Positions 23,768 to 38,067 of a stretch of DNA of 64,000 bases are shown one piece after another. The position numbers were made by a program, and so were the translations under genes. Origin of the DNA: Octopus bimaculoides (taxonomy: Eukaryota). The notes under the pieces are model-generated. The model did no database searches, was not told the DNA's origin, and saw only the letters and a list, made by a program, of their open reading frames with translations. How positions within the stretch are numbered: the stretch's first letter is position 1; every line of letters starts with the position of its first letter. Where the stretch lies: positions 94,016,462-94,080,461 of the forward strand of contig NC_068981.1 in assembly GCF_001194135.2 (NCBI RefSeq), written 5' to 3'.

Positions 23768-24427
23768 ACTTGTCAGTGTGTAAATTGGTGTCTTCTTGTC
23801 TTGGCATTGTGTGACTGTTGTAAATGAGTATTCCCATCATACAAGTCTTTTGTTTCTAGGTTTCCATGGAAACATATCCACCCACAGGGAAAATTTATCT
23901 TACTTGGAAACCAGTGAGTGTTGGTGACAGGAACAGCATCCTGCTATAGAAAATTTTCCTCAGCTAATTTCATCTGATCCATGCAAGCATCAAAAAGTGA
24001 ATGATGATAATGGATGGATGGATTCTTTCTTTCATTCAGTACCACTTTTAACTGCTGGGTCAATATTTGTTTCCCCTTGGCGTGTTTCACAAGTGCATAT
24101 CATATTGGTTTGTAAACAAATCCATCTAAAGTTTAGCTTAAATGTTTGATATGTACGTATGAATGAATGAACAAATGACTGAATGACCATTGTTAATAAT
24201 TCTGTTGTTTATTATTTTCAAGAAATTTGCCACCTATTCAACTAAAGGGAAGAGATATTCCACCAGCTCACTACAACCTAGGGGACATTGGCTTTGTTCC
24301 CCGCTCTTCTCAACCTGGAAATGTGGAATCTGACAGTTCAAGTGAAGAACAACAGACCGAACTTAAAGAAAATTACCAGTCTACTGGAGTTCAGACTTTG
24401 AGTATGAAAAGAGTAAGAACTATGTAG
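659..24427 (+). CDS. CFAP157: Cilia- and flagella-associated protein 157 (spliced, 9 exons, 508 aa if exon 9 is terminal; may extend to about 38067)
   Basis: Exons 659-810, 4493-4614, 6537-6686, 7506-7659, 9856-10123, 12077-12207, 16404-16554, 20766-20959 and 24223-24427 all join through GT-AG with matching phases (1527 nt). Motifs [57 protein letters not shown] and [11 protein letters not shown] match CFAP157/C9orf117 as recalled. Confidence 0.92.
1140..2090 (+). mobile_element. Decayed RTE-clade LINE fragment (PHD-insert family)
   Basis: Translates to [14 protein letters not shown]..., [21 protein letters not shown]... and post-[10 protein letters not shown]..., homologous to 11194-11998, with stops and frameshifts. 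Confidence 0.75.
2413..2588 (+). mobile_element. tRNA-derived SINE family M (core GCCTTTCATCCTTTCGGGGTCGATAAATTAAGTACCAG)
   Basis: A-box and B-box (GAGTTCAAATTC) plus the shared core. Further copies or fragments near 290-440, 7290-7360(-), 34015-34080(-), 40040-40200(-), 42340-42515(-), 60710-60800, 63020-63175 and 63930-64000. Confidence 0.8.
4105..4383. repeat. Long inverted repeat (fold-back), arms 4105-4210 and 4267-4383
   Basis: Near-perfect reverse complement over about 105 bp with a 56-nt spacer. Confidence 0.9.
4493..4614 (+). CDS. CFAP157: CFAP157 exon 2 ([11 protein letters not shown]...YWKQQLKLK)
   Basis: Acceptor TTTTTCAG, donor G|GTAACT; phase 2 in, phase 1 out. Confidence 0.9.
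4631..4780 (+). mobile_element. RTE LINE 3'-UTR fragment with (GAT)n tail
   Basis: AGGAAGGGCAT...GGACGTTAAA...GATGATGAT, the same family as 53779-54567. Confidence 0.7.
4810..4905. repeat. (TA)n microsatellite
   Basis: About 45 TA units. Many similar (TA)n, (CA)n and compound tracts occur across the window, e.g. 1-40, 27100-27260, 29620-29825, 30600-30776 and 35335-35510. Confidence 0.97.
4925..5465 (-). mobile_element. 3' fragment of a second RTE (BovB/AviRTE-like) LINE with C-terminal C2H2 fingers
   Basis: [23 protein letters not shown] followed by [21 protein letters not shown], a typical RTE ORF C-terminus. Confidence 0.8.
5944..6166 (-). mobile_element. RTE 3'-UTR fragment
   Basis: (CAT)n-TTTAACGT...TTTCCATG...CTACAGCTAGATG..CTTCCTAATGC. 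Confidence 0.75.
6537..6686 (+). CDS. CFAP157: CFAP157 exon 3 ([25 protein letters not shown]...AENTIL)
   Basis: Acceptor TTTATAG, donor A|GTGAGT; 150 nt, phase 1-1. Confidence 0.92.
7506..7659 (+). CDS. CFAP157: CFAP157 exon 4 ([12 protein letters not shown]...[11 protein letters not shown])
   Basis: Acceptor AAACAG, donor AG|GTGAGT; strongly conserved motif. Confidence 0.93.
8100..8880 (+). mobile_element. Decayed RTE (BovB-like) endonuclease-RT linker and RT N-terminal fragment
   Basis: Remnants resembling DANIITLYKNKGDRSDCNNYRGISLL (GATACCAATATCATTGATTTCTATGAGGACAGGGGTGAAAGAAGCAACCGTAACAATTACAG). Confidence 0.6.
9856..10123 (+). CDS. CFAP157: CFAP157 exon 5 ([19 protein letters not shown]...LNCQK)
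   Basis: Acceptor TTTTTATTAG, donor AAG|GTGAGT; lies within ORF 9785-10189. Confidence 0.93.
10655..10920 (-). mobile_element. RTE C-terminal and 3'-UTR fragment
   Basis: [16 protein letters not shown] motif followed by the family 3'-UTR. Confidence 0.65.
11194..11998 (-). mobile_element. RTE-clade LINE fragment (RT C-terminal half with PHD-like insert and thumb)
   Basis: ORFs 11704-11973 and 11339-11713: WKQGLE..., C4HC3 finger, [26 protein letters not shown]; frameshifted. Confidence 0.88.
12077..12207 (+). CDS. CFAP157: CFAP157 exon 6 ([14 protein letters not shown]...QLENTE)
   Basis: Acceptor TTACAG, phase 0. Donor GA|GTTGGT was chosen because it gives the phase 2 required by exon 7. 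Resembles IILMLTKKCQE. Confidence 0.8.
13182..13612 (+). repeat. Dispersed unclassified repeat (about 430 bp)
   Basis: Colinear with 60882-61290; about 200-bp core shared with 2190-2390. Confidence 0.8.
13917..14904. mobile_element. Foldback-like element with long modular inverted repeats
   Basis: Two direct ~100-bp units (about 13956-14060 and 14113-14222) are mirrored by inverted units (about 14350-14460 and 14780-14870). Outer ends GCTTACCTATACGAG / CTCGTGTAGGTATGC. Confidence 0.65.
14493..14725 (+). mobile_element. SINE family M, full length, with ~21-bp TSD
   Basis: GGCGGCGAGCTAGCAGAA head and AATAAAGAAAA tail; TSD AGAAACAAAGC(A/T)AACTCATGG at 14453-14473 and 14726-14746. Confidence 0.9.
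15470..15715 (-). mobile_element. RTE 3'-UTR fragment
   Basis: Family consensus CATGCTGGCATGGGTTG...GGATGCCCTTCCTAACACC. Confidence 0.75.
16404..16554 (+). CDS. CFAP157: CFAP157 exon 7 (ETIRTVLQ...[12 protein letters not shown])
   Basis: Long T-tract acceptor TTTTTCAG, donor TTG|GTAAAT; coiled-coil. Confidence 0.88.
17900..18420 (-). mobile_element. R2-superfamily (R4/Dong-like) non-LTR retroelement 3' fragment with restriction-like endonuclease
   Basis: Translates to [10 protein letters not shown]..., [41 protein letters not shown] and [10 protein letters not shown], i.e. zinc-knuckle remnant plus PD..D REL endonuclease motifs. Confidence 0.8.
18708..20638 (+). mobile_element. Fossil piggyBac transposon (PGBD4-like transposase pseudogene)
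   Basis: [55 protein letters not shown] and a C-terminal Cys-rich domain. Right end ...GAGAGGG|TTAA; degenerate left end ATAA|CCCTGTCATGC. Confidence 0.85.
20766..20959 (+). CDS. CFAP157: CFAP157 exon 8 (SLEADDNTS...[15 protein letters not shown]...KKKI)
   Basis: Acceptor TTTTGCAG, donor AT|GTAAGT; motif resembles MLQQLLVMLSS. Confidence 0.85.
21822..22150 (-). mobile_element. RTE 3'-UTR fragment with internal deletion
   Basis: (CAT)n tail; lacks the ~45-nt TGGGTTGGACG...AACA block seen at 34981-35026 and 53818-53863. Confidence 0.8.
22874..23095 (+). mobile_element. SINE family M
   Basis: GGTGAGCTGGCAGAA head plus the core motif. Confidence 0.75.
23352..23500 (-). mobile_element. RTE-type 3'-UTR fragment
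   Basis: CATCATTG.TTTAACATCCAC...GATGCCCTTCCTG. Confidence 0.6.
23574..23725 (+). mobile_element. CORE-type tRNA-derived SINE
   Basis: GGTTCAGTCCCAC B-box and CTTGGGCAAGTGTCTT (CORE-like), ending in (TG)n. Confidence 0.75.
24223..24427 (+). CDS. CFAP157: CFAP157 exon 9 (NLPPIQ...[11 protein letters not shown]...; stop at 24425-24427, or internal donor at 24412/3)
   Basis: Acceptor TTTTCAAG, phase 2; conserved GD(L/I)G(L/F)VPR motif. Confidence 0.87.
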
Positions 24428-25041
24428 TTTCTCTTCTCATACAAAAACAACGTTGTGAAAATAATTAAGATATCATTAAGCAACATATTTCATTTCCTTC
24501 ACCAATGGGTAGCTTGAATGTTGAACAATTTATTGATTTTTTTACAAACATCTGATTTAGTTTTCTGACCATTGGGTGATAGATTTAAATTGTAATTCTC
24601 CATTTTGCAAACTGGAGAAACAGTAACAAGAGTGTAAACCCTTCATTAATTAGGAAATGAATAACTTAAAACTGCTTGTAAAGTAAACAAAATTGTTATT
24701 TACAGTGAGAGAGAGAAAGAGAGAGAGAGGGGGGGAGTGAAGTGTGGAGCAGATCCTAGTGTTATTTAAAGATTGTTAAAGAGATAGAAAGGCTAGAAAG
24801 GCAAAGCACTAAATTCTATTTAAGAAATGTCACTTCTGAACTTTGCTAAGCTAAAACAGCTATGAAAATAGAGTGGCAGATTTGGAGAAATAATATCTTG
24901 TAGAGAGGAGAGCTTTGAAAATAGGTAAAAGAAACGGGTTTGGGGATATAAATATTCTGTTGAAGTAAAACAGTTATAAAATTTGGTGAGTGAGAGTGAT
25001 GAAGCATGAAATGGGAATCAATGACTTATATTGTATTTTAA

Positions 25042-25267
25042 CCTTTTAGCAATTAGATCACCCTGTTAAGTGTAATGATTATTTACTTATTCACACTGTT
25101 TTCAATTAACCATGCATTATTATCTCATAGCTTCAAGATTTCAATGATGTGATTGTTAATTTTTAGAATGACATTGTAGAGTAGGTCTAAGAGGTTGATC
25201 TGGCCTCTTGCAGTATGAAACAGGTAGAATTTTTGGGCTGGATCTGGTCGGTTTAAATGCTAAAAGG
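25042..25267. mobile_element. piggyBac-like MITE family A (TTAA TSD)
   Basis: TTAA|CCTTTTAGCA...TGCTAAAAGG|TTAA, 226 bp. Confidence 0.85.
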
Positions 25268-37776: not shown

Positions 37777-37933
37777 TAGGTACAAGGTAAGTTTTTGTAG
37801 AAATGGAATACAAGTTGATTTGATCTTTATTTGTAAAATTCCAATGCTACCAATGGTTTTATGTAGAAAGAATTCACACAGTTTTTAAGCTATCCACTGA
37901 AAAATGCTGATAATCATCTCCATTTTTGATGAG

Positions 37934-38067
37934 AATACACAAGATTACATGAACCTGCAGAACTTCACTATAAATATAGACGTGAGGAGGAAATTTTGGA
38001 GGATTTCTTAAGAGCTGATAGTGTTATTGGTATTTATCAGCTCTTAAAGGATAAAAACCCAAAATGA
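37934..38067 (+). CDS. CFAP157: Putative terminal CFAP157 exon 11 (YTRLHEPAELHYKYRREEEILEDFLRADSVIGIYQLLKDKNPK*)
   Basis: The open frame is compatible with the phase-1 end of exon 10 through acceptors at 37933 (GAG) or 37960 (CAG). The start is uncertain. Confidence 0.4.

Follow-up and report, generated by a model that had tools for sequence, protein, structure and literature searches.

The 3' end of the CFAP157 gene in Octopus bimaculoides and its distant last coding exon

CFAP157, also known as C9orf117, encodes a cilia- and flagella-associated protein, and the end of this gene in Octopus bimaculoides is the subject of the present analysis. The DNA under study, referred to here as the window, is a stretch of 64,000 nucleotides (nt) from contig NC_068981.1 of assembly GCF_001194135.2 (positions 94,016,462 to 94,080,461, forward strand). 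A previous interpretation made from the letters alone, the sequence-only reading, had proposed that the gene continues beyond an apparent stop codon after exon 9 into two distant exons, which would encode a hidden longer C-terminus. Very probably, the window holds the 3' end of a CFAP157 gene with 10 coding exons, extending over positions 659-36181, with no role for the GT at 36126 or for the open frame at 37933-38067, which are incidental. Exon 9 would be spliced at 24412/24413 over an 11.6-kilobase (kb), repeat-filled, phase-0 intron to a single last exon at 36035-36181. The mRNA would most likely end at AATAAA signals located 130-230 nt past the stop codon, the product would be the annotated protein of 552 amino acids (aa), and the stop codon at 24425-24427 would simply be the earliest in-frame stop within intron 9. 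Overall, the sequence-only reading amounts to a correct rediscovery of an already known, ordinary exon, plus an over-extension into chance sequence.

Gene model and position of the last exon

The CFAP157-like open frames of the window, crudely concatenated and used as a query, match 262 homologues. The top match is the cilia- and flagella-associated protein 157 of O. bimaculoides itself (XP_014778852.1, equal to UniProt A0A0L8GQP2; 552 aa), which maps to the window by tblastn in ten pieces with 100% identity. An exhaustive search of exon boundaries yields exactly one GT-AG model, consisting of 10 coding exons, that gives this protein residue for residue (Table 1). Over the 46,181 nt compared, gaps included, the annotated locus of XP_014778852.1 (GCA_001194135.2, CM046601.1) does not differ from the window, and its coding range corresponds to window positions 659-36181. 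The distant exon and the 24412>36035 junction are therefore already known from the public model, and the C-terminus described as hidden was in fact available in RefSeq and UniProt for the same sequence.

The splice signals at both sides of the junction are readily recognized. Exon 9 is preceded by the acceptor ttttcaag ahead of 24223 and ends as AGT ATG AAA AGA/GTA AGA ACT ATG TAG, where the slash marks the donor. This AGA/GTAAGA donor, placed by the sequence-only reading 12 nt before the apparent stop codon, is located at 24412/24413 and is the one used in the annotated 552-aa model; reading through it in frame adds the residues VRTM before the TAG at 24425-24427. Over exon 9 and its flanks (24102-24900), identity to O. 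vulgaris and O. sinensis is 90.8%. On the other side, the acceptor tgtaatatttttcag (ttttcag/ACT) at 36035, rated as good, is followed by 91 nt (36035-36125) that are open solely in the frame continuing phase 0, which reads TLFFNDEILWQAFPSTKFIENEVTKKPEST, with GTAGTT coming next at 36126. This segment corresponds to the 91-nt exon predicted 11.6 kb downstream, and its peptide, TLFFNDEILW..., turns out to be a conserved CFAP157 box. The signals of the exon 9/exon 10 pair are far above chance, as the join of 24412 to 36035 gives the annotated 552-aa protein exactly; the junction is conserved in octopods, and the prediction of this join and of a longer C-terminus is in this way borne out. The long form includes the peptide TLFFNDEILWQAFPSTK, VRTM would be the C-terminus of the short form, and ELHYK... 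belongs to the further extended form of the sequence-only reading.

The protein XP_014778852.1 terminates with ...KKPESTGSSFSLRPRDFLKSRKLI at the TAG in 36179-36181. All four octopod annotations run past 36125 to a stop codon in the same exon, and the O. vulgaris and O. sinensis genes have the same 147-nt exon 10, with a TAG at the matching position. The long O. vulgaris protein CAI9715535.1, equal to XP_036358978.1 from O. sinensis (553 aa), shares the exon 9/10 junction, the length of exon 10, and the position of the stop with O. bimaculoides, and differs from it at 11 positions within the last 18 residues. Exon 10 is indeed divided into two very different parts. In the first 30 codons, only one synonymous and one nonsynonymous codon separate O. 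bimaculoides from O. vulgaris. In the remaining part (36125-36181, compared with 59748-59804 of the O. vulgaris locus), 11 of 57 nt differ (19%, counting the stop codon) and all 11 differences are nonsynonymous, against a divergence of 4-7% in the flanking non-coding DNA. Several of these changes are conservative (K/R three times, F/Y, and I/V), and a KSR(K/N)L ending is common to the Octopus tail and to Argonauta. The divergence of the tail suggests either a local burst of change in the protein or a mutational hotspot, the numbers being too small to speak of positive selection.

The distribution of poly(A) hexamers also bears on the end of the gene. Clusters of AATAAA past the stop codon, as found in the window (Table 1), occur in O. 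vulgaris (four hexamers) and in Argonauta (four in about 150 nt, five in 1 kb). Sense and antisense hexamers number 39 and 52 in introns 1-8, 19 and 28 in intron 9, and 34 and 12 in 36182-43600. The ratio thus flips past 36181, as expected if transcription of the plus strand stops soon after this point.

Several observations weigh against a last exon read in this manner. No purifying selection is visible between the Octopus species in the last 18 codons, where the 11 differences are all nonsynonymous, and eleven random substitutions would spare both the frame and the stop codon 32% of the time. Codon-level conservation, considered as a proof that these 18 codons are coding, fails on these two counts. 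The case for translation of the tail is consequently an indirect one, made only by the annotation, the length of the tail, its KSR(K/N)L end, and the poly(A) signals. A hidden Markov model (HMM) built from 37 non-octopod tails aligns just the first ~17 residues and cannot separate the two proposed ends, giving 3.5 bits to the read-through tail and 2.8 bits to the tail of the sequence-only reading. The 24412>36035 junction in O. bimaculoides rests on annotation and conservation, and the octopod annotations are not fully independent of each other, since the pipeline used for O. vulgaris took the O. bimaculoides proteome as evidence (PMC10700109). The position of the poly(A) site, and the long form as the main product in O. 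bimaculoides, are given here as inferred.

The conserved C-terminal box and its ancient intron

Judged by its sequence, this gene clearly belongs to the CFAP157 family, as indicated by its full-length similarity, the HYxLGDxGxxPR motif, and a C-terminal box interrupted by its intron. Named CFAP157 proteins of molluscs, brachiopods, cnidarians, echinoderms, and vertebrates match at E values from 1e-55 to 1e-109 with 84-95% coverage of the query, the vertebrate ones at about 1e-60 to 1e-72. The motif HYxLGD[IL]G[FL][VI]PR is present in exon 9 and also in mollusc, brachiopod, amphibian, and tunicate sequences. A Pfam match to the coiled-coil family GAS (PF13851) stays below threshold, with 20.5 bits against a cut-off of 32.3.

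The C-terminal box, G[VI]QTxSxxK/A[ML]F[FY]ADQLL, is visible across the tails of 49 homologues, and is found in 55 of the 127 homologues, from corals and other cnidarians to amphioxus. The version encoded in the window, GVQTLSMKR/TLFFNDEILW, spans the 24412>36035 junction and is diverged in its second half relative to the invertebrate orthologues. These orthologues, which include those of Haliotis asinina, Lingula anatina, Argonauta hians, bivalves, nemerteans, echinoderms, amphioxus, and corals, show full-length similarity, the motif HYxLGDLGxxPR, and the C-terminal box. The length of the tail in octopus (48 aa) falls within that of the homologues (20-52 aa), although most lophotrochozoan tails end in K-V-F/Y and the octopus tail ends in K/R-L-I/V. 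The expectation that peptides of the longer C-terminus would be recognized in molluscan CFAP157 proteins holds for the box in exon 10, which is present in the orthologues, and fails for the peptide of the proposed additional exon, which matches no CFAP157 tail.

Mouse and human CFAP157 belong to the same family by similarity, but the A[ML]F[FY]ADQLL part of the box is not found in the vertebrate sequences inspected among the 127 homologues. Mouse CFAP157 is reportedly needed for the morphogenesis of the sperm flagellum and is said to be a target of FOXJ1. Since the vertebrate sequences inspected lack this part of the box, the function described in mouse is not transferable to the C-terminal exon discussed here.

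The intron that interrupts the box occupies the same place in distant lineages. In each species examined, a GT-AG phase-0 intron lies at the exact codon boundary between K and A of the box (K/A), and the whole tail is contained in a single terminal exon. In Lingula, Haliotis, and Argonauta, as in octopus, this intron is followed by a one-exon tail of 40-50 codons. The proteins XP_036358978.1 from O. sinensis and CAI9715535.1 from O. vulgaris, as well as the model from Argonauta hians, have the identical junction and a stop within the same last exon. Evidence for the junction at the RNA level within cephalopods is provided by a 2,399-nt transcript contig from a Sepia-like cephalopod (Logan SRR8281683), which carries an uninterrupted open reading frame of 561 codons over the junction. 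From the comparison of these sequences, the exon at 36 kb is the ancestral last exon of CFAP157. The suggestion that the transposon-rich DNA from 24.4 to 36 kb is an intron rather than intergenic sequence is therefore correct: it is intron 9, whose position is shared with Lingula, Haliotis, and Argonauta.

What changes among these species is the size of the intron. At the K/A boundary it measures 270 nt in Lingula, 299 nt in Haliotis, 4,619 nt in Argonauta, 11,622 nt in O. bimaculoides, 13,877 nt in O. vulgaris, and 17,285 nt in O. sinensis, being 15-60 times longer in octopods than in other invertebrate orthologues. The proposed course of events is that the terminal exon is ancestral and that only the intron would have been enlarged, from about 0.3 kb to 4.6-17 kb, by the insertion of transposons and microsatellites. 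Intron 9 of the window contains many repeats and microsatellites, together with two gaps of the assembly. Its opening 24 nt show no difference among O. bimaculoides, O. vulgaris, and O. sinensis.

Several species also have an in-frame stop closely following the exon 9 donor. It lies four codons past the donor in Octopus (VRTM and stop, 24413-24427) and in Argonauta (VRSP and stop, 25283-25297 of its locus), where the donor region reads GTAAGATCACCATAG and the stop is at equal offset, and five codons past it in Haliotis (VRTGT and stop, 12587-12604 of locus L004). This early stop probably arises as a by-product of the donor consensus, GTRAGA. By its position, an unspliced message would be truncated at once.

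Alternative ends of the gene

Two alternatives place an end of the protein at the stop codon following exon 9. In one of them, proposed in the sequence-only reading, the gene has true alternative terminal isoforms: beside the 552-aa form there would be a short protein of 508 aa, ending in SMKRVRTM, made from a message in which intron 9 is left unspliced and is polyadenylated within. In such a form, the A[ML]F[FY]ADQLL half of the box would be missing. The annotation of O. vulgaris does include both the long CAI9715535.1 and a short CAI9715536.1 (509 aa), whose ending KRVRTM matches the read-through at window positions 24413-24427, and the alternative forms of that annotation are transcript-based, deriving from PASA updates with Iso-Seq and RNA-seq data (PMC10700109). 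Moreover, the read-through codons and the stop are identical in the three Octopus species, and Argonauta has a stop at the same offset. Against this, an in-frame stop shortly past a GTAAGA donor is common by chance, and neither AATAAA nor ATTAAA occurs in the 3.2 kb (O. bimaculoides) or 3.9 kb (O. vulgaris) that follow the short stop, against an expectation of about seven in 3.2 kb. Within the cluster of homologues, a RefSeq short form is absent for O. bimaculoides and O. sinensis. There is in addition a conserved genomic A-rich run about 1.1 kb downstream (at least 16 A in 20 nt, at window positions 25528-25547 and at 46907-46926 of the O. vulgaris locus), which would be a classic site for internal priming by oligo-dT on unspliced pre-mRNA. 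The annotated short isoform of O. vulgaris may hence be an artefact of internal priming, and the existence of a genuine short isoform is regarded as unlikely, if far from negligible. In the other alternative, scaffolding over the gaps of the assembly would have misplaced the 36-kb exon, and the gene would truly end at 24427. Two gaps of estimated size, 30777-30810 and 34860-34928, do lie between exons 9 and 10, and their repeat flanks cannot be placed by homology: the first adjoins a (CA)n(TA)n microsatellite and the second is bordered by dispersed repeats matching several other places, so that the window alone cannot show continuity over the gaps. As both fall inside intron 9 (24413-36034) and the phase-0 splice junction carries the frame, the reading frame across them is not at issue. 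The comparison loci (Argonauta hians, L001; O. sinensis, L002; O. vulgaris, L003) bear on the order of the exons. Those of O. vulgaris and O. sinensis contain no N and are collinear with window positions 24004-36400 in a single order and orientation, the intron blocks included. The nearest orthologous anchors are at 29844 and 31271 for the first gap, adjacent in both sister genomes, and at 33220 and 35392 for the second, and in each of the three Octopus species exon 10 follows exon 9 on the same strand. The gapless locus of Argonauta has both exons, 4.6 kb apart, and an FBXW5-like downstream neighbour is syntenic in all four species. The matching arrangement of these gap-free loci makes a scaffolding artefact extremely unlikely.

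The last alternative is the full model of the sequence-only reading, where exon 10 would be left at the donor CAG/GTAGTT (36125/36126) and joined to a terminal exon that begins at 37934 or 37961 and finishes at the TGA in 38065-38067, for a protein of 569-578 aa ending in ...LLKDKNPK. The GT and both AG sites (37933/37934 and 37960/37961) are present and compatible with phase 1, the frame is open over 37933-38064, and the conservation of exon 10 stops exactly at 36124/36125, with fast evolution afterwards, as an exon-intron boundary could look. The 19% divergence found past 36125 is nevertheless unlike that of a neutral intron when set against the 4-7% of true non-coding flanks. The donor is not conserved, O. 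vulgaris and O. sinensis having CAA/GTGGTT in its place and Argonauta GTTCCA, and the junction is unused by any annotation in the four octopods, whose models run on to a stop in the same exon. O. vulgaris and O. sinensis, whose proteins carry the read-through tail, do not have the 1.5-kb segment that holds the supposed exon (37633-39137), and a dispersed repeat copy at 37824-38011 covers the first 79 nt of the frame. Neither is a frame of this kind unusual: the 5 kb past 36125 offer 63 phase-compatible AG sites that open onto 34 codons or more, and, for any one frame, 16% of the AG dinucleotides in the window precede an open stretch of 34 codons or more. The tract ahead of the 37961 acceptor is purine-rich (7 of 17 pyrimidines) and the 37934 acceptor is a GAG. 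No AATAAA or ATTAAA is found for 1.1 kb past 38067, and three AATAAA lie at the start of the supposed intron. The peptide of the additional exon scores -1.0 bits against the CFAP157 tail profile, and a phmmer search of the joined peptide against 1.84 billion representatives returned a single borderline match, in a search of low power where the 30-aa CFAP157 part also matched nothing. The phase-1 frame to the TGA at 38065-38067 is thus present in the letters, but as a terminal exon it is at chance level and its segment is missing from the sister species; the model as a whole is highly improbable. A narrower form of it, in which the weak 36125 donor would be occasionally joined to the repeat-derived 37934 or 37961 acceptor in O. 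bimaculoides only, producing a lineage-specific, transposon-adjacent third C-terminus in place of the 18-residue tail, has likewise a very slight chance of being right. In the preferred model, the actual last exon reaches the TAG at 36179-36181, giving 552 aa instead of the 570-580 aa predicted.

Surrounding features and wider meaning

The features of the window discussed above are collected in Table 1.

Table 1. Coordinates of CFAP157 and of adjacent features in the 64,000-nt window
Feature	Position	Strand	Basis or remark
CFAP157 exons 1-4	659-810, 4493-4614, 6537-6686, 7506-7659	+	Unique GT-AG model reproducing XP_014778852.1
CFAP157 exons 5-8	9856-10123, 12077-12207, 16404-16554, 20766-20959	+	Unique GT-AG model reproducing XP_014778852.1
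CFAP157 exon 9 (190 nt; phase 2 in, phase 0 out)	24223-24412	+	Unique GT-AG model
CFAP157 intron 9 (11,622 nt; phase 0)	24413-36034	+	Spliced model; collinear with O. vulgaris and O. sinensis introns
Weak Tc1/mariner-like helix-turn-helix remnant, below cut-off	31538-32269	+	Inside intron 9
CFAP157 exon 10, last coding exon (147 nt; 48 codons and TAG; TLFFNDEILWQAFPSTKFIENEVTKKPESTGSSFSLRPRDFLKSRKLI and stop)	36035-36181	+	Spliced model
Conserved part of exon 10 (30 codons), with C-terminal box	36035-36124	+	Differs from O. vulgaris at 3 of 90 nt
Fast-evolving extreme tail (18 codons), starting at the GT of the proposed donor	36125-36178	+	Comparison with O. vulgaris
Three AATAAA hexamers (36312, 36359, 36412), likely poly(A) signals of the long mRNA	36312-36417	+	About 0.5 expected by chance in 231 nt
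Decayed mariner transposase remnant, just downstream of CFAP157	37100-37754	+	PF01359 Transposase_1, 31.3 bits against a cut-off of 24
Segment of 1.5 kb in O. bimaculoides only, as compared with O. vulgaris and O. sinensis	37633-39137		Blocks 35700-37632 and 39138-40301 abut in the O. sinensis and O. vulgaris loci
Proposed "terminal exon" (44-codon open frame and TGA), judged a non-exon	37933-38067	+	Chance frame in repeat DNA

The DNA that follows the gene contains remains of mobile elements. Open-frame fragments of the mariner element begin at about 36783, and the repeat at 37824-38011 has further copies in intron 9 (27298-27401) and in the sister loci, where both orientations occur. The breakpoints of the 37633-39137 segment show a CTT/GATGAA microhomology. 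An insertion in O. bimaculoides was considered as the origin of this segment and rejected, as the mariner frame is uninterrupted across 37632; for the same reason, a deletion in the lineage of O. vulgaris and O. sinensis is the best account of the difference. Because the segment is deleted there, these two species make CFAP157 without its sequence. A FAINT-repeat protein was also considered, in this case as a homologue of the peptide of the proposed exon, and was rejected as a chance match, with 35% identity and a score inflated by four identical repeats.

Beyond CFAP157, and convergent with it, an FBXW5-like F-box/WD40 gene occupies 43675-62589 on the minus strand and is syntenic in Argonauta, O. 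sinensis, and O. vulgaris. Beyond its last coding exon, the stretch 40447-43675 is 93-95% identical to the sister species, above its neighbours, and contains few minus-strand poly(A) hexamers, which suggests a long 3' untranslated region of the FBXW5-like gene. Within the span of this gene there is a minus-strand open frame of 373 codons (55044-56162), rich in Ser, Asn, and Asp and with no Pfam match, that could be a large lineage-specific exon of the FBXW5-like gene, whose octopod product has 759 aa, or be unrelated to it. An intron of the FBXW5-like gene holds frame-shifted fragments of a PIF1-like helicase on the plus strand (49442-50422; PF05970 with 53 and 62 bits, PF21530 with 34 bits), most likely a decayed element of the Helitron type.

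These results have little import beyond quality control. They illustrate that a real distant exon is recoverable from splice signals and reading frame alone, and that the same reasoning over-extends, the next "exon" being what AT-rich repeat DNA yields by chance. Some small curiosities remain, namely that an ancient intron has grown roughly 40-fold and that the last 18 codons change at a sharply higher rate, together with the status of the short isoform. For the CFAP157 family, the comparison marks out a conserved and uncharacterised C-terminal box of the invertebrate proteins, which in Octopus is followed by an unusually fast-changing tail. The gene also offers a clean case of one ancient phase-0 intron that has expanded from about 0.3 kb to 4.6-17 kb in octopods, while a tiny terminal exon of 147 nt has been kept in use.

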